Shown here: positions 1-35,171 of the stretch, in pieces
Layout of the letters: the number at the start of each line of letters is the position of its first letter
Position numbering within the stretch: position 1 is the first letter of the stretch
DNA from: Macrostomum hystrix
Taxonomy: Eukaryota > Animalia > Platyhelminthes
Assembly: GCA_950097015.1 (NCBI GenBank)
Contig: CATNEN010000001.1
Span: 3,348,001-3,412,000, forward strand
Length of the DNA: 64,000 nucleotides
Direction: 5' to 3'
Notes under the pieces: generated by a model
Told to the model about the DNA's origin: nothing
Database searches by the model: none
What the model saw: the letters and a program-made list of their open reading frames with translations, nothing else
Position numbers and translations under genes: made by a program

Positions 1-3000
1 CGAGGGTCAGTGGGAGGTGGTGAAGTTTCTGGTGCCGACAATCGCTGACCAAAAAGTGAGAGTTCAGTGCTGCAGCGAGGCTGCAAAATCTGCTGCATAC
101 AAGGGTCAGTGGGAGGTGGTGAAATTTCTGGTGCAGACAGTCGATGACCAAAAAGTGAGAGATCAGTGCTGCAGCGAGGCTGCGGAATCTGCTGCAATCG
201 AGGGTCAGTGGGAGGTGGTGAAGTTTCTGGTGCCGACAATCGCTGACCAAAAAGTGAGAGTTCAGTGCTGCAGCGAGGCTGCAAAATCTGCTGCATACAA
301 GGGTCAGTGGGAGGTGGTGAAATTTCTGGTGCAGACAGTCGATGACCAAAAAGTGAGAGATCAGTGCTGCAGCGAGGCTGCGGAATCTGCTGCAATCGAG
401 GGTCAGTGGGAGGTGGTGAAGTTTCTGGTGCCGACAATCGCTGACCAAAAAGTGAGAGATCAGTGCTGCAGCGAGGCTGCGAAATCTGCTGCATACAAGG
501 GTCAGTTGGAGGTGGTGAAGTTTCTGGTGCCGACAATCGCTGACCAAAAAGTGAGAGTTCAGTGCTGCAGCGAGGCTGCGAAATCTGCTGCATACAAGGG
601 TCAGTTGGAGGTGGTGAAGTTTCTGGTGCCGACAGTCGCTGACCAAAAAGTGAGAGATCAGTGCTGCAGCAAGGCTGCGAAATCTGCTGCAAGATCGGGT
701 CAGTTGGAGGTGGTGAAGTTTCTGGTGCCGACAGTCGCTGACCTAAAAGTGAGAGATCAGTGCTGCAGCGAGGCTGCGAAATCTTCTGCATACAAGGGTC
801 AGTTGGAGGTGGTGAAGTTTCTGGTGCCGACAATCTCTGACCAAAAAGTGAGAGATCAGTGCTGCAGCGAGGCTGCAAAATCTGCTGCATACAAGGGTCA
901 GTTGGAGGTGGTGAAGTTTCTGTTGCCGACAGTCGGTGACCAAACTTCGAAACTGAATGTTTGTCGTGACTGCGCAGTCGCGGCCTGCTCTAGTCTGCAT
1001 GAAGATGTCGTTGCTATCCTCGATCTTCAGCCCGAGTGGCTCTTCCAATTCAGTCAAGTGCTCAGCTTCACCGCCTCGATGGCCATTGAGGGCAGGAACT
1101 CGATTCTCACCCAGACTCTGTCTCGAATGCAGCCAGCCCAGATCACGCAGTTGCTCAGTGCTTCAATCTCCCATGGCCATGTCGCACTGGCTCTCACCCT
1201 CATCAATGAGGAGCGACTCAGCAGAGAACACGTCGATCAGCCAGACGACAGCTCAGGAGCCACTGCTCTCATGCTGGCAGCTGATGCAGGTCATCACGAG
1301 CTCATTGAGAGGCTGGTGGATCTCGGTGCGTCAGTGCTAGCTGAAGACAGTCAGGGTCGGACAGCTCTGTCGCGAGCTTGTGAAGCGGGTCACGTGCGAG
1401 CAGCCAAGACTCTGATGGACAGAGGAGCGGATCTGAGTCATCGAGACGGCCGGGGTCGGACTTGTGCGCAGCTGGCGGAGCAGCGCGGACATCAGCAGGT
1501 GCTGCGACTGTTGGGGATCCCGCGATCGAGGTGAGGCAGTCACGCTATGTTAATTTCCTTCAGTATGCAATCTTCAGGAACTGATCCTGCGTGTTAGTTT
1601 GCTTCTACTTGAATTTTCAGATCAAAACTGAGCTGCAAACTGGCTTTGACCGCAGTATTGCCTGAACTGACTCATTGGACCAAAATTTTCCTATCCACGC
1701 ATTTGCATCCCGTTTCTGCTTTTTCCCTCCCCCTCCATACTTTGTCCCAAGGACTACAAATGCAAGGGCCAAGGATGTAACTCTCGATGCATAGAATGTT
1801 TTAATTGCAATTTAATGAGGATGTGGATTTTACTTATGTCAGCATTTTAACTGAATCCCCATTGTGAGCTATGTGAAACAGCTGAAATACAAAGTGATTT
1901 ATAGCAGTTGCTTTATTGTATTAATGATTATTCCGGGAACACTTTCATGCTCTGGTCAAAAGGATATCGGTGTAAATCGGATCTACTTCCTCCTGAACTT
2001 TTCAGCGAACCGAATGCCAAGGAGGCAGCCGGACTCTGCTCCGACTCAAGTCTCACTTGGTGAGTTGCTGATTCTGCTGATCAGCTTGAGATGCCAGTCT
2101 GTGCAGGTGTATAATCCATCAGCTGACTGAGTTCCCCATCATTCCAGGCTCAGAGACGACTCACAGCGGGACAGGCAGCTCAGCGAGGAACTGCACCTAC
2201 TGCTCAGCGAGGCGGGATTCACTGAGGAGAGAGCAATGTGTCAGCAGACAATGGCTGACTGGCTGGTAGGAATCGCTCGAGACCTCACTCAGAACTCGCA
2301 GATGCAGATGACAGGCAGCTACGCAGAAGGCTGGGCCAACAGTCTAGTGCAAGTGAACGGCAGGACAGCGGCTGACTCAGACATTGACTGGACTGTGCTG
2401 GTTCAAGGGCAGCTGCTGCATCTGGAGGGCGGCTGCGATGAAACGAATAATTGGAATGAATGCGAAGTTGCCACGAAGCAGCGGGTCACGGAGGGTCACG
2501 CGCAGGTGGCAGTGGGGTCAGGTGAGTGACATCTGCCATGACATGTGCTTCACGGGTTTAGAGGTTTACGAGTAGTTTGGTGTCAATCCAGGAAAGTTTT
2601 ATGGTTAAAAATAGAGTCCCGAACTTGACGTTTGTCACAAAAATGCTGGGTTTCACCACCCACTGCAGGCAGCCAACCTGCCGTCTCAGCCAAGGCATGC
2701 GGTGTGCGGCCTGCTCAGGACACGTGCCATGCGATCCAGTGCTGCAGCTCATTCTGTGAGCACAGAGTTAGGAAGATGCGAATTAATAACGACAAGGCTC
2801 ACCTCGTGAGGGCAACCAGACCGAATGAGACCAATGAGCTCAGAGTGAGCTTCAGCTTCCAAGAGAAAGAGGCCATGAGACAGCTGAGTACAGTCCAGGG
2901 ACAGCTGTTCTCAATCATCAAGTTCATCTTCAAGAGACATTTGCCACTCACTCTGGACACACCTGGACTCAAGACCTACCATGCAAAGACTCTGCTCTTC

Positions 3001-4263
3001 TTCATGCTGGAGAAGCATGGCACAGACCCGAATGCTGAAGCTTGGCAGCCTCAGAATCTGTTCTCACTGCTGAAGGAGTCTCTCGACATGATGCTGAGCT
3101 TCATCGACTCAAGCAGCTCACCCGATGAGTGCATGCCGCACTTCTTCATGTCCGACGCTCCGCTCTACTTCAAGAACGCTGGAATCGGCGGCGACTTCGA
3201 CAACACGAAGGCGAGGGTTCGAGACCGACTGAGAGAGCTGAGAAGCGACATCGGCGGAGTGGTTGAGCAGATGAGCAGTTTCGTGAGACCTTTACAGTCA
3301 GAGAATTTCTACTTTCACCCGTTCACTCTGCTGCCACTGACAGCGCCGCCTGCTGTCACTCAGATTAGGAATGTCACTTATGATTACGATTATGATTATG
3401 ATTCTGATTATGATTATGAGACGTCAGCAGAAGTGTACAGTGTGGTTCACCATTGTGTTCTTGAGCTGCAGTCAGAGTCTGCAGACAGAGACACCCTGAT
3501 GAGGCAGCTCAGTCTCCTGCATCAGCTGTGGTGGTGCGAGTGCGCTGCCCTGTGCATGACCGCCATGGCGCATTTGAAGTTCGGGGACACCAAGGAGGCT
3601 GAGAGACTCGCGATGAAGCTCCAGTGTCACGGAGTTCAGAGCGGAATGAGGCCTAGTGATCTCGAAGATGAACTGCTACCATCATACTCGGACTGGGCGT
3701 GGAGGTTCTGCCTCCCCGCAGACACTCCGCCTCGATTCCCATTCCTTCCCGAGTTCACGCAGACTCTGCTCACAGCCAGACTGTCTCAGCCTCGCTCTGA
3801 GCACCTTTACGTGAACTTCCGCTGCCTGAGCTGGAGTCTCCAAGCTGAGCTGCTCCGCAATCGCACAGCAATCGACTTCGATGCGTGGCTCTCAGAGCTG
3901 CAAGAGGACCCGGACTTGGAGGAGCTGCTCACTCTGGCTCACTACAGCGACCGAGTTGAGCACGTGGAGTTCAGCCTGAGACAGATGGAGACCGTCAGGG
4001 ACGAGAGACGCGTCGCCATGGAGACGCAGGATGAGGAGAAGATCCGCTGGGTCAGGGAGAAGCTGCGGCGAATTTCCACTCGCAGCGGCAGCCACTCGAG
4101 TTTGGAGGATGAGGAGCGGAGGCTGTGGGTGAGAGCGCGGCTGCAGCTGGTCAATGCTGAGCTCGGTCGGCTAGTTGCCATGGAAACGGTGGCGCAGCAG
4201 AGACGGCTGGATCCACGCGAAGCTGCAGCGGTTCGCGAAGTCTCTGCCGAAGTCACTGAATGA
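1..4263 (+). CDS. Ankyrin-repeat / cGAS-Mab-21-like nucleotidyltransferase (cGLR), copy 1; 5' end outside window; exons <1-1530, 2006-2059, 2148-2521, 2669-4263
   Basis: GT-AG sites at 1531/2005, 2060/2147 and 2522/2668 join ORFs 17-1534, 2236-2529 and 2632-4263 in frame. It has >=9 33-aa repeats plus canonical ANK repeats ([22 protein letters not shown]), the NTase motif TGSYAEG...DSDID, a putative third Asp in QDTCHAI, and Mab-21 motifs [29 protein letters not shown]. Confidence 0.85.
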
Positions 4264-4824
4264 TCAGCGACGCATCACCATGGAGACGGAGAGCGAGTCC
4301 GTCAGCCCGGAGCTCAAGGTCGCTGGACTGTGATTTGAAGGCTTGGAGCTGAGGAACAATGACATGCACCATGATTTGCGTCTTTAGATTTTGTGCTTCT
4401 GGTAGAGTTACGAGTATTGTTGCCTCTCTATTTATTTCATGCATACAAAATTTATCATTTAACTTTGGACTAGTGGGTTACTGACAGTTTGCGCAAATTA
4501 ATGTTGGTTGAAAAATGTCTTTTATTTTGTAATGGATTTGTGTTTTAATGTTTTTTTTATTTCAATTTTTTTCCATTGAATCTTGAGTTCTCCAGACAGC
4601 TTTGAGCATGTTTTTTTTCAACAGCTTTTTATTGCTCAATGATATTCAGTTCTCATTTGTTGTTTCTGAGCATTGCTAATTAATTGGTGTCTGGAGTAAT
4701 AGATGCTCCCTCACATCATAGACAGTGCTGAGATTTGTACTTTTACAGCTGGACTGCTCATACTCGTAAATCTGTCAGTTTGCCCAGCCACACAACTCCA
4801 GCTGGTCTCGTCAGTCTTTTGAAG

Positions 4825-4928
4825 TCAGCCCACCCTGATCAGTTCTCAGAGCCTGAGCTGTCAGCCCACCCTGATCAGTTCTCAGAGCCTGAGCTGTCAG
4901 CCCACCCTGATCAGTTCTCAGAGCCTGA
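4825..4928. repeat. 36-bp VNTR, ~3 copies
   Basis: Unit tcagcccaccctgatcagttctcagagcctgagctg; same unit expanded at 35732-36410. Confidence 0.9.
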
Positions 4929-5639
4929 CCTGGGAGAGGCCATTGTAGGTCAGCGGCTGTGGTGAAAAGTAACGGAATTTAGCAAGCATTTTAGCGGAAG
5001 TTTACGAAATCTCGCAGAGGTTAGCGCAAGTTGAGTACGAGAACAACTTAGGCTGTTTTTATAAAGTAAATCAAAATTTGCTTGAATTTTTGTTCCAATT
5101 TTTTCTTTTCTTTTTTACATTCTAAAAATTGGGTCAGTGCTGTGGTGTGGTGAGATTTAAAATTTTGAATTTTCTTTGGTCATGTGTGTTTTTTTTCAAT
5201 GGTGTAGAATATAAAAAATATATATACCTTACTATTATATTATGTCGACTATTAAAGTAAACACAATAGCCCAGGCGACAATTGTTGGCATGCCTGCTCG
5301 AATTCAATTTTATTTGACATCTATTTAATTACAAATTTACGTTAAATAAAATTGCACAAACCAAACATAGGTTCAATGATTCTAGTGCAAGCAAAAGTGT
5401 TTAAGTAATGAGTAAACAAAGCTGCATTCACAAGCTCCACAGCTGCATCGTGAGCTTCAACCAGGACATCTCATGCTGTTGCCAACAGCTTTCAGGAGCA
5501 CCAACTCGCTGATGTTGATGCTGTTGTTGTTGTGGGTGATGCAACTAAAGCTACAGAATACAAAATACTCCAACAGGACGTGCTGCGTCGTATCGTCCTC
5601 CAACTCGCAAAACCTTGCCGACAATGAGCTGGCAGGCTT

Positions 5640-6040
5640 ACTGACAAGTCTTGCTGACAGTCTTGCTGACAGTCTTGCTGGCAGTCTTGCTGACAAGTCT
5701 TGCTGACAGTCTTGCTGACAGTCTTGCTGACAGTCTTGCTGACAGTCTTGCTGACAAGTCTTGCTGACAGTCTTGCTGACAGTCTTGCTGACAGTCTTGC
5801 TGACAGTCTTGATGACAGTCTTGATGACAGTCTTGATGACAGTCTTGATGACAGTCTTGATGACAGTCTTGATGACAGTCTTGATGACAGTCTTGCTGGC
5901 AGTCTTAATAGCAGTCTTGCTGACAGTCTTGCTGACAGTCTTGCTGGCAGTCTCGCTGGCAGTCTCGCTGGCAGTCTTGCTGGCAGTCTCGCTGGCAGTC
6001 TCGCTGGCAGTCTTGCTGGCAGTCTCGCTGGCAGTCTCGC
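5640..6040. repeat. 12-bp tandem repeat (gacagtcttgct and variants)
   Basis: Direct inspection; paralogous array at ~37125-37535. Confidence 0.9.
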
Positions 6041-7012
6041 GTCAGTGGCTGTGTGGCGCCTTGCCTCTACCTCAGCTGTCTCAGCTCTCTCTTAGCTCAC
6101 TTAGCGAACTTTGCTAGCGCTCACCTTCAATCTAACCGAGAATTATCTCTTCACTTCATGCTCCAACACCTGATTTCGTGACTAATTGCCGCGCGGTCTC
6201 TTCCTAGTTGCCTCAGCGCCTTCAAGCACACCTTGCTACACTGCACGTCTATCGACGATTCTGCCTCCTACTGCGGGTCGTCCAGTCTCTCGAAGGCCAA
6301 GTCAACCCGGATCCAGGTGATCAGCCCTCCCACAGTCAAACAGCATGTTGTTTGTGCCTACAGCGGTCTTAACTGCTCAGCCAGGTACACACACCTCCTC
6401 CATTGTGAGTCTAGTGTCTCGCAACAGCAGCACATCCACTCGATAAAATCCTTTACAGTTCACAGTTGCACTGAAGTACCGTGAGACCCTGTTTGCACTG
6501 CCCGCTGCCCGATCTCGCGCTTCTAAATCAGCACCCGCTGCGCCTCAACAGAAACACCTTAAATTAAAAAACAGATAAACAAATATTCACTAAGTCAGCA
6601 ATCCATTTAAACAGAACAGATAGGAATTAACACACAAGAAACAGAATGGGTCAGAAAGTGTATTTGATAATTGAGGCAAAGATAAACAAAAGAAAACAGT
6701 ATTTAAATTGTGTCATTTAGTTGGACAGATGAAACACAAGGCACACAATAATCATTGCCAGATAAGAGCAAATACTAATATTGTAGAATAAGAATTTGAC
6801 AATTTCGCATTCCATTCAAGTGCATTGGTTCGATGCCTATGTAATTTATGAATATTATAATTGACATGTGCCTTCTAGGGTGAAATGCCACCTGCTGCTA
6901 ACAAGTAGTTTTAACGGACATGAAATACAGAATGGAATCGTTTTTTTGCTGCTACTAAAAGAAAGTGAGAAACTGGTCAAAGCAAATAGTCAAGATATTG
7001 CGTTGTAGTACA

Positions 7013-7543
7013 TCAACTACGCCAGAACATAACAGACATTAGCATCCTCTTCAATCGGCCCTTCAAAGTGTGATCATCTGTCACAGTCTGAGGATTAGGA
7101 TTAGTAACAGAAGCTAGTTTACATGCGACATTGTGCATAAACCCTGATCCAACAGCCAATACAGTGCATACTAGACACAGGACATTGTATGGCATGCTGA
7201 AGTCTGGCTTTGGAACATTCACTAGCAATGCTTCAGTGTACAGTCGAACAAATGTTGGTTCAGTTGTGACATTCTGTGACAAGCTGTCAGTCAACAATTG
7301 ACCAACTGACAGTGCAGATTGTGACAGAACAGGTAGGCGTAGAGTCACGTCTGTCGGTGTGTTGAACGACAGCACAGTCGGTGGAAGGTACAGGCCGTGA
7401 TTTGCATCCGGCGGAAATTCATTCCAACGAACTAGCTGCTTGGCGAATCGATAACTGATGCGCAGTGTGGCTCTTGGTGGAACACTGACTAACAGTTCGA
7501 GCTTAGCTGGTCTGTGACGATCAACACTTTGCTGATAGTGCAC
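7013..7543 (-). pseudogene. PIGT: Orphan duplicate of the last exon of PIG-T
   Basis: Near-identical to 38507-39037 (PKPDFSMPYNV). Homology ends near 7600 and no upstream PIG-T exons are seen nearby. Confidence 0.8.
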
Positions 7544-7889
7544 CTGGACAATTGGCGTTGATAGGAATTTTGTAGTTCAGCAGCTGATTGCAACCAGACC
7601 ATTAACTACTGCTAATTCGGATCAATTGCTTTGAACTGCTCCGCTAGGCTTGCATGTTACCCTCGTATTTATAATGGGGATAATCTTAGAGCAATGGGAT
7701 ATAAAGCAACAAGTGCGATTCGCTCATACAATGGAGTGTATTGAATCCTTAACTCAACAACTTTTGAGTTTATTTGATTATTCGTGACAGCTTCGTTAGA
7801 CTCTGTCTAACCTGGTGAAGACCCAATCAACCTGGACTTGAAAATTGATCCAAGCAGTTGCACAGGACGCATTCGCTAAATGGTGACGG

Positions 7890-10387: not shown

Positions 10388-10563
10388 AGCTCAACGTGAA
10401 GGAGGCGCCACAGAACAGGTTGCAGAGGTGGCCAAGGAACCTGTCATTTTTCACCGCTTCATGCAGTAAGGCGGGGTAAATGTTGTCAGGTCCAGGCGAC
10501 TTGAAAGGCAAGAAGGAATTGGCAGCCCGAGCTGTCCGTTTTATAGTGATAACGGTGGCAGCT
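10388..10563 (-). mobile_element. Non-LTR retrotransposon (R1/LOA-like) RT N-terminal fragment
   Basis: Translation SFLPFKSPGPDNIYPALL resembles the K(S/A)PGPDG motif that precedes LINE RT domains. Confidence 0.6.
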
Positions 10564-11139
10564 AGATTAGATCTACTCATTCCACTGTTAGATCTACTCA
10601 TTTCATTGTTAGATCTACTCATTCCAATGTCAGATCTACTCATTCCACTGTTGGATCAACTCATTCCACTGTTGGATCTACTCATTCCACTGTTGGATCT
10701 ACTCATTCCACTGTTGGATCAACTCATTCCACTGTTGGATCTACTCATTCCACTGTTAGATCTACTCATTCCACTGTTGGATCTACTCATTCCACTGTTA
10801 GATCTACTCATTCCACTGTTAGATCTACTCATTCCACTGTTAGATCTACTCATTCCACTGTTAGATCTACTCTTTCCACTGTTAGATCTACTCATTCCAC
10901 TGTTAGATCTACTCATTCCACTGTTAGCTCTACTCATTCCACTGTTATATCTACTCATTCCACTGTTAGATCTACTCATTCCACTGTTAGCTCTACTCAT
11001 TCCACTGTTAGATCTACTCATTACACTGTTAGATCTACACATCCTACTGTTAGATCTACTCATTCCACTGTTAGATCTACTCATTCCACTGTTAGCTCTA
11101 CTCATTCCACTGTTAGATCTACTCATTCCACTGTTAGAT

Positions 11140-15951: not shown

Positions 15952-18900
15952 ATGGCCAGCAAATCGAATGACGCAGCTCCACCTGATGAGAATGGCATTG
16001 AACATGCTGCAGCAAATGGTGACTTGGAGATGGTGAAGTTGCTGGTGCAGACAATCGCTGATCAAAAAGTGAGAGATCAGTGCTGCAGCGATGCTGCGAA
16101 ACGTGCTGCAATCAAGGGTCAGTTGGAGGTGGTGAAGTTTCTGGTGCCGACAATCGCTGACCAAAAAGTGAGAGATCAGTGCTGCAGCGAGGCTGCAAAA
16201 TCTGCTGCATACAAGGGTCAGTTGGAGGTGGTGAAGTTTCTGGTGCCGACAGTCGCTGACCAAACAGTGAGAGATCAGTGCTGCAGCAAGGCTGCGGAAT
16301 CTGCTGCAATATGTGATCAGTGGGAGGTGGTGAAGTTTCTGGTGCCGACAGTCACTGATCAAAAAGTGAGAGATCAGTGCTGCAGCGATGCTGCGAAACG
16401 TGCTGCAATCGAGGGTCAGTGGGAGGTGGTGAAGTTTCTGGTGCCGAAAATCGCTGACCAAAATGTGAGAGCTCAGTGCTGCAGCGAGGCTGCGGAATCT
16501 GCTGCAATATGTGATAAGTGGGAGGTGGTGAAGTTTCTGGTGCCGACAGTCGCTGACGAAAAAGTGAGAGATCAGTGCTGGAGCGATGCTGCGAAACGTG
16601 CTGCAATCGAGGGTCAGTGGGAGGTGGTGAAGTTTCTGGTGCCGAAAATCGCTGACCAAAATGTGAGAGCTCAGTGCTGCAGCGAGGCTGCGGAATCTGC
16701 TGCAATCAAGGGTCAGTGGGAGGTGGTGATGTTTCTGGTGCAGACAATCGCTGACCAAAAAGTGAGAGATCAGTGCTGCAGCGAGGCTGCGGAATCTGCT
16801 GCAATATGTGATAAGTGGGAGGTGGTGAAGTTTCTGGTGCCGACAGTCGCTGACGAAAAAGTGAGAGATCAGTGCTGGAGCGATGCTGCGAAACGTGCTG
16901 CAATCGAGGGTCAGTGGGAGGTGGTGAAGTTTCTGGTGCCGAAAATCGCTGACCAAAATGTGAGAGCTCAGTGCTGCAGCGAGGCTGCGGAATCTGCTGC
17001 AATCAAGGGTCAGTGGGAGGTGGTGAAGTTTCTGGTGCCGACAGTCGCTGACCAAGCTTTGAAACAGAATGTTTGTCGTGACTGCGCAGTCGCGGCCTGC
17101 CCTAGTCTCCTTGAAGATGTCGTTGCTATCCTCGATCTTCAGCCCGACTGGCTCTTCCAATTCAGTCCAGTGCTCAGCTTCACCGCCTCGATGGCCATTG
17201 AGGGCAGGAACTCGATTCTCACCCAGACTCTGTCTCGAATGCAGCCAGCCCAGATCACGCAGTTGCTCTGTGCTTCAATCTCCCATGGCCATGTCGCACT
17301 GGCTCTCACCCTCATCAATGAGGAGCGACTCAGCAGAGAATACGTCGATCAGCCAGACGACAGCTCAGGAGCCACTGCTCTCATGCTGGCAGCTGATGCA
17401 GGTCATCACGAGCTCATTGAGAGGCTGGTGGATCTCGGTGCGTCAGTGCGAGCTGAAGACAGTCAGGGTCGGATAGCTCTGTCGCGAGCTTGTGAAGACT
17501 CTGATGGACAGAGGAGCGAATGTGAGTCATCGAGACGGCCGGGGTCGGACTTGTGCGCAGCTGGCGGAGCAGCGCGGACATCAGCAGGTGCTGCGACTGT
17601 TGGGGATCCCGCGATCGAGGTGAGGCAGTCATGCTGTGTTAATTTCCTTCAGTATGCAATCTTCAGGAACTGATCCTGCGTGTTAGTTTGCTTCTACTTG
17701 AATTTTCAGATCAAAACTGAGCTGCAAACTGGCTTTGACCGCAGTATTGCCTGAACTGACTCATCGGACCAAAATTTTCTTATCCACGCATTTGCATCCC
17801 GTTTCTGCTTTCCCCCCCTCCCTACTTTGTCCCAAGGACTACAAATGCAAGGGCCAAGGATGTAACTCTCGATGCATAGAATGTTTTAACTGCGATTTAG
17901 TAATTATAATAATGATTATGCCAAGAACACTTTCATGGTCTGGTCAAAAGGATATCGGTGTAAATCGGATCTACTTCCTCCTGAACTTTTCAGCGAACCG
18001 AATGCCAAGGAGGCAGCCGGACTCTGCTCCGACTCAAGTCTCACTTGGTGAGTTGCTGATTCTGCTGATCAGCTTGAGATGCCAGTCTGTGCAGGTGTAT
18101 AATCCATCAGCTGACTGAGTTCCCCATCATTCCAGGCTCAGAGACGACTCACAGCGGGACAGGCAGCTCAGCGAGGAACTGCACCGACTGCTCAGCGATG
18201 CGGGATTCACTCAGGAGAGAGCAGAGTGTCAGCAGAAAATGGCTGACTGGCTGGAAAGAGTCGCTCAAGCCCACACTCAGAACTCGCAGATGCAGATGAC
18301 AGGCAGCTACGCAGAGGGCTGGGCCAACAGTCTGGTGCAAGTGAACGGCAGGACAGGACAGGACTCGCAGATGCAGATGACAGGCAGCTACGCAGAGGGC
18401 TGGGCCAACAGTCTGGTGCAAGTGAACGGCAGGACAGCGGCTGACTCAGACATTGACTGGACTGTGCTGGTTCAAGGGCAGCTGCTGCATCTGGAAGGCA
18501 GCTGCGATGAAACGAATAATTGGAAAGGCTGCAAAGGTGCCACGAAGCAGCGGGTCACGGAGGGTCACGCGCAGGTGGCAGTGGGGTCAGGTGAGTGACA
18601 TCTGCCATGACATGTGCTTCACGGGTTTAGAGGTTTACGAGTAGTTTGGTGTCAATCCAGGAAAGTTTTATGGTTAAAAATAGAGTCCCGAACTTGACGT
18701 TTGTCAAAAAATGCCACTGGGTTTCACCACCCACTGCAGGCAGCCAACCTGCGGTCTCAGCCAAGGCATGCGGTGTGCGGCCTGCTCAGGACTCGTGCCA
18801 TGCGATCAAGTGCTGCAGCTCATTCAGTGAGCACAGAGTTAGGAAGCTGAGCATTTATAAAGAAAATGTTCACCTCGTGAGGGCAACCAGACCGAATGAG

Positions 18901-20406
18901 ACCAATGAGCTCAGAGTGAGCTTCAGCTTCCAAGAGAAAGAGGCCATGAGACGGCTGAGTACAGTCCAGGGACAGCTGTTCTCAATCATCAAGTTCATCT
19001 TCAAGAGACATTTGCCACTCACTCTGGACACACCTGGACTCAAGACCTACCATGCAAAGACTCTGCTCTTCTTCATGCTGGAGAAGCATGGCACAGACCC
19101 GAAGGCTGAAGCTTGGCAGCCTCAGAATCTGATCTCACTGCTGAAGGAGTCTCTCGACATGATGCTGAGCTTCATCGACTCAAGCAGCTCACCCGATGAG
19201 TGCATGTCGCACTTCTTCATGTCCGACGCTCCGCTCTACTTCAAGAACGCTGGAATCGGCGGCGACTTCGGCAACACGAAGGCGAGGGTTCGAGACCGAC
19301 TGAGAGAGCTGAGAAGCGACATCGGCGGAGTGGTTGAGCAGATGAGGAGACTGGTGAGACCTCTGCAGTCAGAGAATTTCTACTTTCACCCGTTCACTCT
19401 GTTGCCACCGACAGCGCCGCCTGCTGTCACTCAGGTAAGGGAAGGATTTCGTGATAGTTATGAGATGTCAGCAGAAGTGTACAGTGTGGTGCACCATTGT
19501 GTTCGCGAGCTGCAGTCAGAGTCTGCAGACAGAGACGCCCTGATGAGGCAGCTCAGTCTCTTGCATCAGCTGTGGTGGTGCAACTGCGCCGTCCTGTGCA
19601 TGACCGCCATGGCGCATTTGAAGTTCGGAGACTCCGAGAAGGCTGAGAAACTCGCGATGGAGCTCCAGAGTCACAGAGTTCAGAGTGGAATGAGGCCCGG
19701 TGATATCAGATACAATCTGCCATCAGACTCGGACTGGGCGTGGAGGTTCTGCCTCCCCGCAGACACTCCGCCTCGATTCCCATTCCTTCCCGAGTTCACG
19801 CAGACTCTGCTCACAGCCAGACTGTTGCAGCCTCGCTCTGAGCACCTGTACGTGAACTTCCGCTGCCTGAGCTGGAGTCTCCAAGCTGAGCTGCTCCGCA
19901 ATCGCACAGCAATCGACTTCGATGCGTGGCTCTCAGAGCTGCAAGAGGACCCGGACTTGGAGGAGCTGCTCACTCTGGCTCACTACAGCGACCGAGTTGA
20001 GCACGTGGAGTTCAGCCTGCGACAGATGGAGACCGTCAGGGACGAGAGACGCGTCGCCATGGAGACGCAGGATGAGGAGAAGATCCGCTGGGTCAGGGAA
20101 AAGCTGTGGCGAATTTCCACTCGCAGCGAAAGCCACTCGAGTTTGGAGGATGAGGAGCGGAGGCTGTGGGTGAGAGCGCGGCTGCATCTGATCAATGATG
20201 AGCTCGGTCGGCTGGTTGCTATGGAAACAGTGGCGCAGCAGAGAGACGGCTGGATCCACGCAAAGCTGCAGCGGTTTGCAAAGTCGCTGCCGGAGACGCT
20301 GATCAGCGATGCGTCGCGATCGAGACGGAGAGCGAGTCCGTCAGCCCGGAGCGCCAGCGGAGAGGCAGGAAGCGGAAGGCAGAGGACGGCAGGTGAAAAC
20401 CGCTGA
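15952..20406 (+). pseudogene. Ankyrin-repeat cGLR copy 2, frameshifted by a 23-nt deletion at 17497/17498; exons 15952-17619, 17994-18047, 18136-18590, 18740-20406
   Basis: Same exon structure and motifs as copy 1, with 10 variable repeats. Sequence equivalent to 1386-1408 is missing and the spliced frame stops at 18244-18246. NTase exons remain open. Confidence 0.75.
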
Positions 20407-25176: not shown

Positions 25177-25319
25177 TCTCCTCACATTTGACACTTTATA
25201 GTACTCTAGTTCACTTGGGTCTTCCGTACAAATCCTTAAACAATTGAACTCTTAAACGGATATTTTGAGCTAGCATGCCATGCAAGTAGAAAAAATGCTT
25301 ATTTGAAGCACTAATATAC

Positions 25320-27008
25320 ATTCCACTGTTAGATCTACCCATTCCACTGTTAGATCTACCCATTCCACTGTCAGATCTACACATTCCACTGTCAGATCTA
25401 CCCGTTCCGCTGCTAGATCTACCCATTCCGCTGTTAGATCTACCCATTCCGCTGTTAGATCTACCCATTCCGCTGTTAGATCTACACATTCCACTGTTAG
25501 ATCTACCCATTCCACTGTTAGATCTACCCATTTCACTGTTAGATCTACCCATTCCGCTGTTAGATCTACCCATTCCGCTGTTAGATCTACCCATTCCACT
25601 GTTAGATCTACCCATTCCACTGTTAGATCTACCCATTCCACTGTTAGATCTACCCATTCCACTGTTAGATCTACCCATTCCACTGTTAGATCTACCCATT
25701 CCACTGTCAGATCTACACATTCCACTGTCAGATCTACCCGTTCCGCTGCTAGATCTACCCATTCCGCTGTTAGATCTACCCATTCCGCTGTTAGATCTAC
25801 CCATTCCGCTGTTAGATCTACACATTCCACTGTTAGATCTACCCATTCCACTGTTAGATCTACCCATTTCACTGTTAGATCTACCCATTCCGCTGTTAGA
25901 TCTACCCATTCCGCTGTTAGATCTACCCATTCCACTGTTAGATCTACCCATTCCACTGTTAGATCTACCCATTCCACTGTTAGATCTACCCATTCCACTG
26001 TTAGATCTACCCATTCCACTGTTAGATCTACCCATTCCACTGTCAGATCTACACATTCCACTGTCAGATCTACCCGTTCCGCTGCTAGATCTACCCATTC
26101 CGCTGTTAGATCTACCCATTCCGCTGTTAGATCTACCCATTCCGCTGTTAGATCTACCCATTCCGCTGTTAGATCTACACATTCCACTGTTAGATCTACC
26201 CATTCCACTGTTAGATCTACCCATTCCACTGTTAGATCTACCCATTCTACTGTCAGATCTACCCATTCCACTGTCAGATCTACACATTCCACTGTTAGAT
26301 CTACCCATTCCACAGTTAGATCTACTCATTCCACTGTTAGATCTACACAATCCACTGTTAGATCTACTCATTCCACTGTTAGATCTACCCATTCCACTGT
26401 TAGATCTACACATTCCACTTTTAGATCTACTCATTCCACTGTTAGATCTACCCATTCCACTGTTAGATCTACACATTCCATTGTTAGATCTACTCATTCC
26501 ACTGTTAGATCTACTCATTCCACTGTTAGATCTACTCATTTCATTGTTAGATCTACACATTCCACTGTTTGATCTACCCATTCCACTGTTAAACCTACAC
26601 ATTCCACTGTTAGATCTACCCATTCCAATGTTAGATCTACACATTCCACTGTCAGATCTACTCATTTCACTGTTAGATCTACCCATTCCAATGTTAGATC
26701 TACACATTCCACTGTTAGATCTACCCATTCTACTGTCAGATCTACCCATTCCACTGTCAGATCTACCCAGTCCACTGTCAGATCTGTCAGATCTGTCAGA
26801 TCTACCCATTCCACTGTCAGATCTACACATTCCACTGTTAGATCTACCCATTCCACTGTCATATCTACTTATTCCACTGTCAGATCTACCCATTCCACTG
26901 TCAGATCTACCCATTCCACTGTCAGATCTACCCATTCCACTGTCAGATCTACCCATTCCACTGTCAGATCTACCCATTCCACAGTTAGATCTACCCATTC
27001 CACTGTTA
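25320..27008. repeat. 21-bp satellite (gttagatctacccattccact), same family as 10564-14070
   Basis: Direct inspection. Confidence 0.95.
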
Positions 27009-27789
27009 CACATTTCATATTTGGCGTGTCAGGTCTGAAAGGCTTCTCGCCAGTGAGCTATTGAGCCAGTGAGCTATTGAGCCAGTGAGCTATCGAACAG
27101 TTTCAATGCTGGTAGGTTACAGAATGCGGCAGCTGGCCTGCAAAGTCCTACTCAAAAGCTGGCGAGGCCTTTCAGACTGCCAAACATTGGGGAAGTTGCC
27201 AATCGCTCCTCTATAGCCCATTGTGCTATTGTGCATTGTGCTACAGACCAGGAAATAAATTTTCCCATTTTGGTCTGCTGTGGGGAGCCAACCTGAGTGC
27301 GGGCTGACAGCAACACCAGCAACCCCACTCCACGCGGTTTCTAATCCGCAAAGGAAGCCAGGAACGGAACTTCAATGCAGGGAGTGTGCGAGTTGACGAA
27401 ACAGCTGGCTTCTTCAAGCAGAGAGTGCCAAAGCTAAGAAAAGCTGATCGTCAGGTCGTAAGAGCTCAGCTCCCCGATCCGAAACTTGTGCAGGCCTTCC
27501 TAGCCGCCCTTTTACCCCACTCTCCTGTCTAGTATCAGACTGGCTGCTTCAGCATAATCTGCCAGAAATTCATTCGACCGTCAGCAGCCAAGTAAAAGAC
27601 ATCGGCGAACCGACTGTGAGCTCTGCCGCAACCCGTGAGCAGCTGGTGAGTCAGTCTGCACTGATTGAGTAAATATTTAACTGCAGCAGTATGTGCATGC
27701 TCATGCAGTGCTCAAGACATATACATACTATATAGACCATTCTAAACAGCCTCATCTGAATCTGCCAGACTCAAGCCGCACAAATCTAG

Positions 27790-28620
27790 TCCCTCCGAGT
27801 ATCTCACCCTTCATCTATCCGCCCTCCTACAACTTCCGCCCCTCCGAGTATCTCACCCTTCATCTATTCACCCTCCTACAACTTCCGCCCCTCCGAGTAT
27901 CTCACCCTTCATCTATCCACCCTCCTACAACTTCCGCCCCTCCGAGTATCTCACCCTTCATCTATCCACCCTCCCACAACTTCCGCCCCTCCGAGTATCT
28001 CACAATTCATCTATCCACCCTCCCACAACTTCCGCCCCTCCGAGTATCTCACCCTTCATCTATCCACCCTCCTACAACTTCCGTCCCTCCGAGTATCTCA
28101 CCCTTCATCTATCCACCCTCCTACAACTTCCGCCCCTCCGAGTATCTCACCCTTCATCTATCCACCCTCCTACAACTTCCGCCCCTCCGAGTATCTCACC
28201 CTTCATCTATCCACCCTCCTACAACTTCCGTCCCTTCGAGTATCTCACCCTTCATCTATCCACCCCTCCAACTATCCACCCCTCCAACTATCCGCCCCTC
28301 CAACAATCCGCCCTCCAGCTATCCACCCCTCCAACTATCCGCCCCTCCAACAATCCGCCCCTCCAACTATCTGCCCTCCAGCTATCCACCCCTCCAACTA
28401 TCCGCCCCTCCAACTATCCACCCCTCCAACTATCCGCCCCTCCAACAATCCGCCCCTCCAACTATCCGCCCTCCAGCTATCCACTCCTCCAACTATCCGC
28501 ACCTCCAACTATTTGCCCCTCCAACAATCCGCCCTCCAACAATCCGCCCCTCCAACAATCCGCCCCTCCAACTATCCGCCCCTCCGACTATCCGCCCCTC
28601 TAACTTTTTGCCCCTCTAAC
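27790..28620. repeat. 49-bp repeat grading into the 16-bp C-rich minisatellite
   Basis: 49-bp periodicity over 27790-28260, then ccaactatccgcccct units. Confidence 0.88.
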
Positions 28621-28794
28621 ATATTTGAAAAGGTGGGTGGTTAGAAAATGGTTAGTTTGAGGGGTAGTTCAGTAGTCTTCAGTCCGGAATCAATCTGACA
28701 CTTCGCAGTAAACTTAGCTAAAGGATTTACTTTTTATTAAAACTTTGCAATTCACAAATAGTCTTTCTTATCTCGCTAATTTCAGAATTAAAAA

Positions 28795-31700
28795 ATGGAC
28801 TCGCAGACCGAAGAGTGGCTGGAAAAGTTGCGGACAATCGATGACCAAACAGAAAGAGATCAGTTCTGCAGAGAGGCTGCGGAATCTGCTGCAAGATCGG
28901 GTCAGTGGGAAATTGTGAAGCTTTATGTGGCGAAAGTCGCTGACCAGAAAGTGAGAGATCAGTGCTGCAGCATGGCTGCGAAATCTGCTGCAAGATTCGG
29001 TCAGTGGGATATGGTGAAGTTTTTTGTGCCGAAAGTCGCTGACCAAAATTTGAAACTGAATGTTCGTCGTGACTGCACAGTCGCGGCCTGCTCTTGTCAC
29101 CGTGAAGATGTCGTTGACTTCCTCGATCTTCAGCCCGAGTGGCTCTTCCAATTCAGTCAAGTGCTCAGCTTCACCGCCTCGATGGCCATTGAGGGCAGGA
29201 ACTCGATTCTCACCCAGACTCTGTCTCGAATGCAGCCAGCCCAGATCACGCAGTTGCTCTGTGCTTCAATCTCCCATGGCCATGTCGCACTGGCTCTCAC
29301 CCTCATGAATAAGAAGCGACCCGGCAGAGAATACGTCGATCAGCCAGACGACAGCTCAGGAGCCACTGCTCTCATGCTGGCAGCTGATGAAGGTCATCAC
29401 GAGCTCATTGAGAGGCTGGTGGATCTCGGTGCGTCAGTGCGAGCTGAAGACAGTCAGGGTCGGACAGCTCTGTCGCGAGCTTGTGAAGCGGGTCACGTGC
29501 GAGCAGCCAAGACTCTGATGGATAGAGGAGCGGATGTGAGTCATCGAGACGGCCGGGGTCAGACTTGTGCGCAGCTGGCGGAGCAGCGCGGACATCAGCA
29601 GGTGCTGCGACTGTTGGGGATCCCGCGATCAAGGTGAGGCAGTCATGCTGTGTTAATTTCCTTCAGTATGCAATCTTCAGGAACTGATCCTGCGTGTTAG
29701 TTTGCTTCTACTTGAATTTTCAGATCAAAACTGAGCTGCAAACTGGCTTTGACCGCAGCATTGCCTGAACTGACTCATTGGACAAAATTTTCTTATCCTC
29801 GCATTTGCATCCAGTTTCTGCTATTTCCCTCCCCCTCCCTACTTTGTCCCAAGGACTACAAATGCAAGGGCCAAGGATGTAACTCTCGATGCATAGAATG
29901 TTTTAACTGCATGATGTGGAGTGTACTACGGGAATCGAGTGGGAATGTGAGCCAGCAGAATTTTTCAAATTTTAGGCACTTAATAATCGCGACCCACCTA
30001 GCAGCTGGCCGCAAACAAGATCATTAATCTTAGGGCCTGGTTTGGGGCGGCGGTGAATTAAGTAGCCGTCGAATCCCCTCTCCCTGGATCTGTTTAGCCC
30101 TTTGTAGGAATGACTGATCGCGGGCCATAACTTTATTGTATGAGTAGTTTAGGTCATAATTCCCCTCCAAACCGCGATCAGATATTGGGAATCACTCGGG
30201 CATTATGAGTGATCATTAATTCTTCATGCCCCCACTTCTTTACAGTATTCGAGCCCAGCTCGACTTTATGACCTCCTCTCTTAGATACATGTAAATGTCA
30301 CTGTAGGCAGGTCGGCGCCTGCGCTTCTCATTGTCCTGGCGGAGAAACAATTATTGGCCGACTGCCGGCGGCTGCTCGTAAAGGAGCATCTGTCGTTTCT
30401 CGCCGCCGGTTCATTGGGTAATCGGGGTGGCCATCGCCGCTTCGATTCCTCGATGACAGGCTGGCGCGAATGTGGGTTATTTTGTTGAATGTCGAGGTTG
30501 GCGTGCTGCAGGACTATTTAAGAAAGCGCGCTGCGCTACTCCCCCGAGGACCCCCCTTCCAACGGACCTTCGGACCCGTACCTTCTGGCGGACCCTCTCC
30601 GGACCTCCGCCCAGAGACTTAACCCTCTCCGGACCCCCGGACCTTTTTCCCCACTTAGGGCTTAGACCCTAGAGCTTTAAGCTCATCTAGTGCTCACAGG
30701 CTCATTGCCTGCCTATAAGCTCCGAGTAGTACAAGCCACCTCTTTAGGTGACTTGACTTGACTTACTTGACTTAGCGGCAGGGAGCCTCCATGACGGACG
30801 CAGCGAGGAGGCGGCAGATGCCGCCCATATCGCTAACCCCTGGCAGCCAGACAGCCTCCAGCGAGGCGATGCCGCTCAGGGTGGTCCGTCGGTCGATTCC
30901 GCCGCGCGATCTTCCTCGCCATAGGCTGGGAAGAAATCAGCTCGGCCGGTATCCCGGAGGAAGTGGGCGAGCTGTGGGATGTTCTCGGGCGAGCAGGCTT
31001 CGGCGAGAGTCGGTGCCGGCCCGAGATGTTTTAGCCTGGCCCGGGTGAAGGCCGGGCAGTGGCAGATGAAATGCTCTGCATTTTCGCGTCCGGAGCAGCA
31101 GAAGGGACACGTTTCCTCAGGCACGTGGCCTTGAAGGTAGCGGTGTCTGGTGAAGCAGCCATGTCCCGAAAGAGCCATAGTGACTGCTCTTAGGTCTCTG
31201 CGGTTAAGCCTGAGTAAGGCCTTACGCAGGTTACTAGAGGGGGTTGGCACCGCAGCCCTGGACTGGCGACAGTTCACGGTGCTGGACCACCTCCTCCGGT
31301 GCTGGGTCTCCTCTTTAGGTGAGCTCTCGAATTGAGCCACTGAGCTCCACTGGTGTGTTGGCCCCTGCCAGCTCACAATTAGTTTTCCCCTCCTCCTTCC
31401 TCGCTAATCTTGCCCCGTCACTCCCACGAGAACTACAGGCCTGCGGCACGCGATCGGCTCTCGGATAAGTAACCCGCGTAGCGGCTTTAATTGTTATTCC
31501 TAAGGGACTTTTACTTCTAGCTAGGCGGCATAATAGTGGGAAAGGGCATCGGGATTTTTAGCCTAATAAACTAATCGCCGTTAGCCAAATACTTTACATT
31601 AGGCCAATTTTAATTACAATTTAAATCCTTTCACCTTCTGTTCGCCTCCATGTTTAATTTCACTACTAGACAGCCCTCAGCTATGAGTGGCTAATCTTCT

Positions 31701-34700
31701 AGGGGGTGGGCTCTGGTGATGCCGAGCTGAAGGCTGCGGCAGGAGGACAACTGTAAGCGCGCACAAAAGTAATAAGGAGCTAGAGATTTGCAAGCAGATG
31801 CGGAGGTAGTATGTGCATTTCTTCCCAGGGGGTTGGGGGAATCCTTGGCCGGCTTTCCTTCTCCCTCTTGGGCGGGCTCCCTTTCGCAACTGCGGCCACG
31901 GGAGCGAGAGTGATGACTTAATAATCTTTCGCTTGCATAATCACTCAGCCAGTGTTCTGCTTAATCTCTCCAGCCTCTGATTTCCTCAACTCACACAGAT
32001 TCGGATTTGTTAGTTACTTAATGTGTAGGCTGCAGTCTAATGTATAGAATGTGTCTGATGTCTTATGAGTAGGATTCTGGCTATGGATTCTCATTCAAGT
32101 TCTTAGTACCACCTTTCTAGACCCCTGTAGCCCGAATTCAGGAATCCCCTTTTGAGGCGTGTCTCGATCCATTCTGGGGCTCTCACCCCAGTCTAAAACG
32201 GAAGTTGCAGAATGCCCTATTTTTTCGGCTTGTCTAGATCTGCGTGATAAACTAGGAGCTGTGTACTCCGGGGACCCAAGTTCCCAAATGCCTGCGGTGG
32301 CAACGTAGGCGCATTGGGTGGTGGCGCTACCCTAGATCATTTTCCGCTTTGCCGATAGCCGTTCCGCAGTTCTGTGACAAGAGCCTAGGCCGTTTCGACC
32401 ACCGCTACCAAGGTTAGGAGTCAGTTGCGCACGTACTACTGACGACAGTAGGCTGTCTAGCCCTGTCCTGTCCGATTCCGGATAGTCCGACGCCTCTCTT
32501 TTTAGACTTTTAGCCGGTTTCGAGCATTGCTTGGGGTAACGGCAGTCATGCCTGTGGCCTATGGGACGAGTGGGACTGGCCAGCATGAGGCCGATAGGAC
32601 CACTCCCTGCATCTACTGAACCTCCTCATCTCTCCCTTCATCTCCTCTCTCTCTCCGCGACATCTCGCGAGTAGCTAGGTGGATATTTAATTGACTATGT
32701 CGCCCGCCTCTAGCAATCATCTCTCATGAGGGCAGGTCAGCGGTTGCAAAACACCCAAACCATGTCAGGATGATCTTCTCCATGACTAACCATTTCATGC
32801 AAATCGGATCTACTTCCTCCTGATCTTTTCAGCGAACCGAATGCCAAGGAGGCAGCCGGACTCTGCACCGACTCAAGTCTCACTGGGTGAGTTGCAGATT
32901 CTGCTGATCAGCTTGAGATGCCAGTCTGTGCAGGTGTACAATCCATCAGCTGACTGAGTTCCCCATCATTCCAGGCTCAGAGACGACTCACAGCGGGACA
33001 GGCAGCTCAGCGAGGAACTGCACCGACTGCTCAGCGAGGCTGGATTCACTGAGGAGAGAGCAAAGTGTCAGCAGGAAATGGCTGACTGGCTGCAAAAAGT
33101 CGCTCAAGCCCTCACTGTGATGCAGATGCAGATGCTGATGTCAGGCAGCTACGCATATGGCTTTGACAAAAATCTGGTGAAAGTGAACGGCAGGACAGGG
33201 CAGGACTCGCAGATGCAGATGACAGGCAGCTACGCAGAAGGCTGGGCCAACAGTCTAGTGCAAGTGAACGGCAGGACAGCGGCTGACTCAGACATTGACT
33301 GGACTGTGCTGGTTCAAGGTCAGCTGCTGCATCTGGACGGCAGCTGCGATGAAACGAATAATAAAGGCTGCGAAGGTGCCACGAAGCAGCGGGTCACGGA
33401 GGGTCACGCGCAGGTGGCAGTGGGGTCAGGTGAGTGACATCTGCCATGACATGTGCTTCACGGGTTTAGAGGTTTACGAGTAGTTTGGTGTCAATCCAGG
33501 AAAGTTTTATGGTTAAAAATAGAGTCCCGAACTTGACGTTTGTCACAAAAATGCTGGGTTTCACCACCCACTGCAGGCAGCCAACCTGCCGGCTCAGCCA
33601 AGGCATGCGGTGTGCGGCCTGCTCAGGACACGTGCCATGCGATCGAGTGCTGCAGCTCATTCTGTGAGGACAGAGTTACGAAGATAAACACTTCTACCGG
33701 CAATGTTCACCTCGTGAGGGCAACCAGACCGAATGAGACCAATGAGCTCAGAGTGAGCTTCAGCTTCCAAGAGAAAGAGGCCATGAGAAATCTGAGCACA
33801 GTCCAGGGACAGCTGTTCTCAATCATCAAGTTCATCTTCAAGAGACATTTGCCACTCACTCTGGACACACCTGGACTCAAGACCTACCATGCAAAGACTC
33901 TGCTCTTCTTCATGCTGGAGAAGCATGGCACAGACCCAAATGCTGAAGCTTGGCAGCCTCAGAATCTGATCTCACTGCTGAAGAAGTCTCTCGACATGAT
34001 GCTGAGCTTCATCGACTCAAGCAGCTCACCCGATGAGTGCATGCCGCACTTCTTCATGTCCGACGCTCCGCTCTACTTCAAGAACGCTGGAATCGGCGGC
34101 GACTTCGACAACACGAAGGTGAGGGTTCAAGACCGACTGAGAGAGCTGAGAAGCGACATCGGCGGAGTGGTTGAGCAGATGAGCAGTTTCGTGAGACCTT
34201 TACAGTCAGAGAATTTCGACTTTCACCCGTTCACTCTGCTGCCACTGACAACGCCTGCTTTCACGAAAATAAGGAAAGGATCTAATCATCGTAAACCAGT
34301 TGGTTGTGTGAATGTTGATTTATCTACATTCTTATACAGTGACGTGTACAGTGTGGTGCACCATTGTTTTCTTGAGCTGCAGTCAGAGTCTGCAGACAGA
34401 GACACCCAGATGGGGCAGCTCAGTTTCCTGGATGAGAAGCCGTGGTGCAAGTGCGCCGACCTGTGCATGACCGCCATGGCGCATTTAAGATTCGGGGATA
34501 CCAAGGAGGCTGAGAGACTCGCGATGGAGCTCCAGAGTCACAGAGTTCAGAGTGGAATAAGGCCTGGTGATATCGGATACAATCTGCCATCAGACTTGGA
34601 CTGGGCGTGGAGGTTCTGCCTCCCCGCAGACACTCCGCCTCGATTCCCATTCCTTCCCGAGTTCACGCAGACTCTGCTCACAGCCAGACTGTCGCAGCCT

Positions 34701-35171
34701 CGCTCTGCGCACCTGTACGTGAACTTCCGCTGCCTGAGCTGGAGTCTCCAAGCTGAGCTGCTCCGCAATCGCACAGCAATCGACTTCGATGCGTGGCTCT
34801 CAGAGCTGCAAGAAGGCCCGGACTTGGAGGAGCTGCTCACTCTGGCTCACTACAGCGACCAAGTTGAGCACGTGGAGTTCAGCCTGAGACAGATGGAGAC
34901 CGTCAGGGACGAGAGACGCGTCGCCATGGAGACGCAGGATGAGGAGAAGATCCGCTGGGTCAGGGAGAAGCTGCGGCGAATTTCCACTCGCAGCGGCAGC
35001 CACTCGAGTTTGGAGGATGAGGAGCGGAGGCTGTGGGTGAGAGCGCGGCTGCAGCTGGTCAATGCTGAGCCCGGTCGGCTGGTTGCCATGGAAACGGTGG
35101 CGCAGCAGAGACGGCTGGATCCACGCGAAGCTGCAGCGGTTCGCGAAGTCTCTGCCGAAGTCACTGAATGA
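28795..35171 (+). CDS. Ankyrin-repeat cGLR copy 3 (~980 aa); exons 28795-29633, 32833-32886, 32975-33429, 33577-35171
   Basis: Exon phases join in frame (2943 nt). Two variable repeats plus canonical ANK repeats; GS...DSDID...QDTCHAI and Mab-21 motifs are intact. Confidence 0.85.
29915..32800 (-). mobile_element. LTR-retrotransposon 3' remnant in intron 1 of cGLR copy 3 (putative 3' LTR 31377-29915, PPT 31383-31402)
   Basis: Absent from the paralogous introns. TGTG...CACA termini, an adjacent minus-strand purine tract gaggaaggaggagggg, and minus-strand AATAAA at ~30132. Confidence 0.55.
30752..31309 (-). mobile_element. 5'-truncated non-LTR retrotransposon with 13-bp TSD
   Basis: C-terminal CCHC (CPFC...[10 protein letters not shown]) after SGHGCF; (aagtc)n-like 3' tail; TSD cctctttaggtga at 30739-30751 and 31310-31322. 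Confidence 0.85.

Follow-up and report, generated by a model that had tools for sequence, protein, structure and literature searches.

We analyzed a window of 64,000 nucleotides (nt) from the genome of the flatworm Macrostomum hystrix (assembly GCA_950097015.1), in which positions 1-35171 hold three tandem paralogous genes, here called copies A, B, and C. These genes probably encode proteins that join an ankyrin (ANK) solenoid, a linker, a nucleotidyltransferase (NTase) of the Mab-21/cGAS type, and a helical domain, within a family of about 140 loci, and that work as cGAS-like receptors (cGLRs). Pfam searches, a profile search, and the structure model of a homologue all agreed with the identity as ANK-array/cGAS-like fusions that the original prediction had assigned from the letters of the sequence, and they support the presence of a complete predicted NTase active site.

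Exon structure and reading frames of the three copies

The three paralogues showed DNA identities of 90-95% in a self-comparison of the region. Copy A begins upstream of the window and ends at about 4500, copy B spans about 15950-20400, and copy C spans 28795-35171. Each copy has four coding exons, which carry the ANK array, a 54-nt micro-exon, the NTase core, and the Mab-21_C domain together with the helical C-terminal region. The features are listed below (aa, amino acids).

1..1530, plus strand: copy A exon 1; 12 near-identical 33-aa repeats and canonical ANK repeats, Ank_2 E 8e-47, donor AG/GT at 1530
2006..2059, plus strand: copy A micro-exon, linker, 54 nt; AG/GT flanks
2148..2521, plus strand: copy A exon 3; N-terminal spine helix, NTase core; motifs GS (TGSYAEGW) and DxD (SDIDW)
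2669..4263, plus strand: copy A exon 4; third catalytic Asp, Mab-21_C E 5.8e-7, hypervariable loop 3357-3600, helical and possibly TPR-like C-terminal domain
4264..7599, no strand: 3' flank of copy A; duplicated with the copy C flank 35172-39093, 0.86% mismatch; last exon of Gpi16 at 7013-7543 (minus strand)
15952..17619, plus strand: copy B exon 1; 11 repeats, 23-nt deletion between 17494 and 17495
17994..18047, plus strand: copy B micro-exon; conserved splice sites
18136..18590, plus strand: copy B exon 3; 81-nt tandem duplication of the GS loop, extra unit about 18282-18362
18740..20406, plus strand: copy B exon 4; open frame, AQDSCHAIKC, Mab-21_C
28795..29633, plus strand: copy C exon 1; 2-3 33-aa repeats and canonical ANK tail, Ank_2 E 9e-23
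29912..32797, no strand: dispersed repeat (transposable element) in copy C intron 1; alignment gap in comparison with A and B
32833..32886, plus strand: copy C micro-exon; conserved splice sites
32975..33429, plus strand: copy C exon 3; 81-nt duplication, extra unit about 33124-33204, diverged
33577..35171, plus strand: copy C exon 4; third Asp motif, Mab-21_C, C-terminal domain

The spliced model was searched exon by exon. The open reading frames (ORFs) at 17-1534, 15931-17673, and 28795-29637 matched Pfam Ank_2 with E values of 8e-47, 5e-37, and 9e-23, respectively, and Mab-21_C (PF20266) was found above the cut-off, with E of about 1e-6, in the ORFs 2632-4263, 18646-20406, and 33540-35171. 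The four-exon joining of copy C was checked by script. All three of the junctions predicted for it (29633/32833, 32886/32975, and 33429/33577) proved to be GT..AG, and the joined exons gave one open frame of 2943 nt, or 981 codons, in which the sole stop was terminal. The equivalent junctions of copy A (1530/2006, 2059/2148, and 2521/2669) also had GT/AG sites and matching phases. The ATG of copy A lies 259 nt upstream of the window (protein start MASKSND...), and its frame was open for about 1270 codons with all splice sites present. Copies A and C are thus apparently intact.

The splice sites of copy B were conserved as GT/AG at the equivalent junctions (17619/17994, 18047/18136, and 18590/18740). 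The last canonical ANK repeat of this copy, however, carries a 23-nt deletion, between 17494 and 17495. Reading from its own ATG through the conserved splice sites brought exon 3 out of frame, with a stop at codon 37, while exons 3 and 4 were still open in themselves. The original prediction had the ANK and Mab-21 ORFs spliced in frame through the 54-nt micro-exon in all three copies. For copies A and C the GT/AG sites and the phases agree with this, but copy B does not splice in frame, because the deletion shifts the frame into the exon 3 stop. Copy B is probably a recent pseudogene.

The copies also differ in the number of 33-aa repeats, which was 12 in A, 11 in B, and 2-3 in C. Intron 1 of copy C holds a 2.9-kb insertion (29912-32797) that is absent from A and B and has dozens of dispersed matches in the genome (87 matching segments listed). 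This element consists of a dispersed repeat of about 2.3 kb and a 558-nt insertion (about 30752-31309) that most other copies of the element lack; a Pfam search with the 166-aa ORF of the dispersed repeat gave no domain. In exon 3 of B and C, the segment for the GS loop is duplicated in tandem (81 nt, 27 aa); this duplication was not found in A, in the M. lignano proteins, or in other paralogues. The extra unit was identical to the neighbouring unit in B and diverged from it in C.

The arrangement of the exons was then compared with that of paralogues in the whole assembly (220,453,370 bases in 42 contigs). At 19 of 20 paralogous loci, with exon 4 identities of 50-92%, the ANK tail, exon 3, and exon 4 were collinear on one strand within a few kb. 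The donor and acceptor of intron 3, with a Gly codon split in phase 1, were kept in all 20 paralogues, although the intron between them has diverged in sequence. Among the closer paralogues, the donor of intron 1 and the acceptor of intron 2 were conserved as well.

The best database matches of the exons were all proteins of Macrostomum lignano, at 70-82% identity, and most of these carry ANK and Mab-21_C in one chain. For exon 4 of copy C, the nearest database proteins were M. lignano ANK/Mab-21_C proteins with 70-75% identity. In four M. lignano proteins (P0005, P0028, P0002, and P0018), the last ANK repeat, a linker of about 18 aa, and the NTase core follow one another without a break. These proteins align to the window exon by exon, and the break between ANK and NTase in the window corresponds to the micro-exon, whose peptide had its best local match exactly at the ANK-NTase linker in three of the four M. 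lignano proteins tested. The junction of exons 3 and 4 read AVG[A/S]-G-SQPA both in the M. hystrix window and in M. lignano. The GenBank annotation of M. lignano was built from a genome-guided RNA-seq transcriptome (PMC5730564). The splicing model is supported indirectly, because phases and collinearity are conserved in the paralogues and because the M. lignano fusion proteins are derived from RNA-seq; copies A and C are accordingly predicted, from their sequence, to encode a single ANK-cGLR polypeptide each.

It could be argued that the ANK and NTase exons yield separate products, by an operon-like arrangement with spliced-leader trans-splicing, or as alternative isoforms, and that the fusion is rare or absent. 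Macrostomum trans-splices many mRNAs, and about 7% of the assembled M. lignano transcripts are polycistronic precursors (PMC5730564). NTase-only models also exist in M. lignano (P0001), and exon 3 contains an in-frame Met. However, the phases are compatible and the frame is open across the junctions, both of which are conserved in paralogues; the ANK exon of the fusion gene has no stop ahead of its donor; and the M. lignano coding sequences continue through the linker. We therefore regard separate products as very improbable. A candidate intronless paralogue at C2:3319432, with an open frame of 1192 aa, was rejected, since the frame extends downstream of exon 4 and not upstream.

Active site and fold of the NTase

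The catalytic motifs of cGAS-type NTases were examined in each copy. GS, in the context GS(YAEG), DxD, and the downstream Asp, in AQD[T/S]CHAIxC, were present in all of A, B, and C, as the original prediction had stated, and they aligned to the catalytic residues of cGAS. Among 81 homologous sequences, which were aligned after a search of 1.84 billion proteins, the five catalytic positions were kept in 75 (G), 74 (S), 72 (D), 73 (D), and 70 (third D) sequences. The profile of the family matched Sp-cGLR1 (8gjy) in the PDB with an E value of 3.6e-31, cGAS with about 1e-22, MB21D2 with 3e-21, and MAB21L1 with 6e-16. The profile alignment laid the GS, DxD, and third Asp of the family on the GS, E/D, and Asp of cGAS. 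The loss of active-site residues expected of inactive Mab-21 proteins (MAB21L1/2/3 and MiD49/51) was not observed: the residues were present and conserved.

The fold was analyzed with the M. lignano homologue P0001, which is 70% identical to exon 4 and stood in for the window protein. The AlphaFold model of P0001 had a predicted local distance difference test score (pLDDT) of 88 and a predicted template modelling score of 0.88, and the top Foldseek matches of this model were all cGAS (E 1e-7). In VIA-align, residues 14-339 gave Z scores of 14.0 to MB21D2, 13.8 to Cv-cGLR1, 13.5 to Sp-cGLR1, 13.0 to cGAS, and about 10 to bacterial CD-NTases. The comparison of a structure model with cGAS and MB21, which had been proposed as a check on the identification, thus returned a cGAS/cGLR fold (Z 13-14) for this homologue.

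Residues 357-606 of the P0001 model, which correspond to about codons 330-530 of exon 4, matched only TPR-like helical repeats, with Z of about 8, a value within the noise range for helical repeats. The model suggests that the C-terminal domain of the family is helical and possibly TPR-like. More distant relatives from outside Macrostomum (P0097) have Pfam TPR repeats after Mab-21_C, and the whole architecture may be ANK-cGLR-TPR. Between Mab-21_C and the C-terminal domain lies a hypervariable loop (3357-3600 in copy A). Copy A has a YDYDYDYDSDYDY run there, and the corresponding stretches of B and C differ from it in length and are unrelated in sequence. The loop equivalent to this patch formed the one low-confidence stretch (pLDDT 56) in the homologue model.

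The same fold would also be expected if the proteins were scaffolds or adaptors, like MAB21L1 and MiD49/51, and not signalling enzymes, with the ANK repeats making protein-protein contacts in development or reproduction. The Z scores of the P0001 model to MAB21L1 (12.8) and MiD49 (11.5) were near the values for cGLRs. In addition, Table S3 of Li et al. (2023) includes five M. lignano cGLRs that were screened for products (samples 89-93), and none of them has a product name (PMC9980059). Samples 92 (PAA93208.1) and 93 (PAA68676.1) showed the conserved motifs of the window family by eye and were screened with the ANK part removed. However, this blank is weak evidence, because only about 15 of the 140 screened proteins were active (PMC9980059). 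GS, DxD, and the third Asp were kept in 70-75 of the 81 homologues, distant ones included; Mab21L1/2/3 are without a predicted functional active site (PMC9980059, legend of Figure 1), and the family profile ranked cGLR1 and cGAS over MAB21L1. A scaffold role is, in our judgement, unlikely in comparison with a signalling enzyme.

Duplication, gene conversion, and selection

The segmental duplication shared by copies A and C reaches 3.3 kb beyond the stop codon, with 0.86% mismatch. After copy C, the whole gene for Gpi16, a subunit of the glycosylphosphatidylinositol (GPI) transamidase, is present (38507-39037 and 41029-41568, both minus strand). After copy A, only the last Gpi16 exon was found (7013-7543, minus strand), within a 98.3%-identical block that pairs 4824-7599 with 36307-39093. 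This Gpi16 fragment is a passenger of the segmental duplication from which A and C arose.

The divergence between A and C was 3.95% in the gene body (5.8% with the hypervariable patch) in comparison with 0.86% in the flank (p 3e-15). Synonymous divergence (dS) between A and C was 0.076 and was raised as much as non-synonymous divergence (dN). A sliding comparison showed that in the patch at A 3357-3600, copy C was 98% identical to a paralogue at 4.30 Mb, about 0.95 Mb away, against only 69% to A. Where exon 4 begins, copy A shared 98.7% identity with a paralogue at 4.29 Mb, and copy B shared 98% with one at 4.33 Mb. Because dS was raised as well as dN, we read the divergence of the gene body as gene conversion and not selection, and the copies are mosaics produced by gene conversion or recombination between clusters. 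A faster divergence of exons than of introns was considered and rejected: it looked significant with all sites included but was mostly due to one hypervariable patch, and with the patch removed the p values were 0.41, 0.08, and 0.02.

The original prediction had described a diversifying receptor family undergoing birth-and-death evolution. The second part agrees well with the tandem and segmental duplication, the broken copy B, the repeat numbers of 12, 11, and 2-3, and the mosaic exon 4. The first part, diversifying selection, was not shown, as pooled ratios of non-synonymous to synonymous differences (pN/pS) were 0.6-0.8. Among 10-12 close paralogues, the pooled pN/pS was 0.61 for the ANK tail, 0.77 for exon 3, and 0.67 for exon 4; where comparisons of A, B, and C gave values above 1, these depended on 1-5 synonymous changes. 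In exon 4, the median dN/dS was 0.77 for pairs with dS below 0.1 and dropped to 0.25 at high divergence. These data show fast evolution under weak purifying selection; the pN/pS of 0.25-0.35 at larger divergence shows long-term purifying selection on the family.

Variation within the repeat array was almost all non-synonymous. It peaked at unit positions 29-30 (I/Y/R and K/E/C/S/F), followed by positions 22, 17, and 8. Positions 29-30 are, by our own mapping to the ANK consensus, which is offered as a lead only, the xx of AAxxG on the usual ANK binding face.

The same comparisons bear on whether A, B, and C are functionless by-products of segmental duplication in an over-amplified family, decaying and drifting to pseudogenes. 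The frame of copy B is broken, exon 4 dN/dS among A, B, and C was 0.7-1.05, the GS-loop duplication in B and C is odd, and copy C has a transposable element in intron 1 and a shortened array. However, copies A (about 1270 codons) and C (981 codons) retain open frames and every splice site, exon 4 was open in all 23 sampled paralogues, and the low pN/pS at larger divergence reflects long-term constraint on the family. Decay of all three copies is therefore distinctly unlikely, and somewhat more so than a scaffold role.

The regions around the copies were also inspected. Minisatellite arrays lie between the copies at 10567-11139, 13218-14066, and 25315-27008 (21-nt step), and further arrays were found at 14646-15532 (16-nt step) and 27791-28621. 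These minisatellites yield long spurious ORFs, for example at 25211-27013, 27693-28619, and 13099-14076. Between minisatellite arrays, at 11334-12674 on the plus strand, there is a 446-aa ORF that combines a SAP domain with a phage-integrase N-terminal SAM-like domain. The cluster is flanked by housekeeping genes, a single-exon gene for an SLC26-type sulfate permease with a STAS domain (49977-51965, plus strand) and a cobalamin adenosyltransferase (59065-59922, minus strand).

The family in the genome and its relation to known systems

The size of the family was estimated from genomic matches. Exon 4 of the spliced model matched at least 82 places and the NTase-core exon matched 147, nearly all without internal stops. 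The family thus has about 140 loci in the M. hystrix genome, as matched by the NTase-core exon, and they are mostly clustered; the clusters on contig 1 include those at 4.29-4.33, 11.36-11.41, and 12.72-12.82 Mb. The exon 4 frame was intact in 23 of 23 sampled paralogues, and other family members have ANK exons of more than 1000 aa. Two relatives annotated in M. lignano, P0031 with 1099 aa and P0147 with 1444 aa, each contain Mab-21_C, ankyrin repeats, and a caspase domain, and they are either cGLR-ANK-caspase fusions or merged models of neighbouring genes.

Possible receptors of a nucleotide messenger were also investigated. A search of the genome with Pfam STING_LBD gave one near-threshold place, at 25 bits against a cut-off of 27. 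The STING-like candidate lies at C2:9104028-9105038 (minus strand). Its paralogues occupy about a dozen loci (14 matching places), some of which are clustered at C2:8.97-9.10 Mb. Seven loci, namely the candidate and six paralogues of 32-43% identity, matched STING_LBD alone in Pfam. Six of the seven did so with E values of 1e-5 to 3e-4 and 20.8-25 bits, under the cut-off of 27, and the seventh (32% identity) had an E value of 0.028; the five paralogues at 39-43% identity had E values of 3e-5 to 3e-4. The alignment of the family opens with GEAFAWNFATTFLRLILPNLE, a stretch that the profile lays on coral STING (E 1e-3). The AlphaFold model of the candidate had a pLDDT of 57, which is low confidence, and its top Foldseek matches were all STING ligand-binding domains (E 1e-7). 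A search for homologous proteins with the candidate found no database relatives, and the protein atlas gave no useful neighbour for it. Sequence and model together point to a divergent and perhaps expanded STING-like family in this flatworm genome, which is likely but not proven.

If the window genes work as cGLRs, the ANK array, and perhaps also the C-terminal helical domain, would bind a ligand or a partner protein and control the enzyme. The NTase would then make a nucleotide second messenger, possibly a cyclic dinucleotide, which may be read by the divergent proteins with a STING ligand-binding domain encoded at about a dozen loci. An immune role, with the ANK array as the sensor, would fit this scheme. 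The family would grow and be reshuffled by tandem and segmental duplication, by unequal crossing-over in the repeat array, and by ectopic gene conversion between clusters.

Several points weigh against this reading. The evidence for the fold is that of an M. lignano homologue with 70% identity, and Pfam on the NTase-core exon alone gave no significant match (NTP_transf_2 E 0.13, in copy B only). The 27-aa duplication in B and C adjoins the active-site loop. All five M. lignano constructs (#89-93) are without a recorded product, and the two of this family, #92 and #93, were expressed without ANK. A pN/pS of 0.6-0.9 in young copies is also expected from relaxed constraint. The STING-like family, finally, is below the Pfam cut-off, has no database relatives found, and is represented by a low-confidence model.

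Much of this architecture has precedents. Li et al. (2023) catalogued about 3,000 cGLRs, some of which are fused to TPR or ankyrin repeats; certain bivalves have more than 200 cGLRs, and most platyhelminths have none beyond Mab21-like proteins (PMC9980059). The class of ANK-cGLR fusions and members from M. lignano had thus been catalogued already, and the novelty put forward in the original prediction was overstated. In the literature on Macrostomum with cGLR, cGAS, or STING, no description of the family was found, and the M. hystrix genome paper (PMC10468722) makes no mention of ankyrin, Mab-21, or immunity. The family size in M. hystrix, the mosaicism between clusters, and the unannotated STING-like family may be new.

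A broader interpretation is that Macrostomum has a large combinatorial system of innate recognition. Most of the roughly 140 cGLR loci would have modular ANK arrays built of near-identical repeats, and the few variable surface positions of these repeats, as well as their number, would be reshuffled by unequal crossing-over and conversion between clusters. These arrays would sense protein or glycan and not nucleic acid, and they would be wired to a nucleotide messenger and to a co-expanded, divergent STING family that current annotation misses. As a whole, this interpretation is speculative, and we think it improbable. If the window genes work as cGLRs, as proposed above, a free-living, culturable, and genetically manipulable flatworm would have one of the largest cGLR repertoires known; transgenesis and RNA interference exist in its relative M. 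lignano. With nearly all members fused to repeat arrays, the family would open experimental access to ligands of cGLRs that are not nucleic acids. The view that cGLR signalling was lost in most flatworms would then need qualification, and the divergent STING-like family would widen the known range of STING sequences. The window alone provides a corrected annotation of three paralogues, one of them broken, and a local example of duplication plus gene conversion.

Among known systems, the ANK-fused cGLRs of Li et al. (2023; PMC9980059, Fig. 1C/S2A), for example those of Stylophora pistillata with ANK or death domains, resemble the window genes in having a complete Mab-21/cGAS NTase and ankyrin repeats in one polypeptide. 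The genomes they come from also show a large radiation of cGLRs, and they have several STING genes, for which the likely STING-like family would be the M. hystrix counterpart. Unlike them, the window genes have a long array of near-identical 33-aa repeats, variable in number between copies, and an extra helical C-terminal domain of about 250 aa. The M. lignano proteins annotated as BOX15_Mlig... (P0005, 893 aa, and P0028, 1217 aa) belong to the same family and share its architecture, motifs (SDIDW and AQDTCHAI), and linker, with exon 4 70-75% identical, but they are from another species and are annotated as hypothetical only. Sp-cGLR1 (8GJY), Cv-cGLR1 (8GJW), human MB21D2 (7LT1), and mammalian cGAS have the same fold (Z 13-14) and the same catalytic residues as the window family, although identity to them is about 14-20% and the window family adds the ANK and C-terminal domains. 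Tandem clusters of NLRs and other innate receptors are comparable by analogy only. They share with the window family a repeat array, in the window family a putative sensor, joined to a signalling module, and also the tandem clusters, the pseudogenes, the varying number of repeats, and gene conversion, whereas their proteins are unrelated to it.

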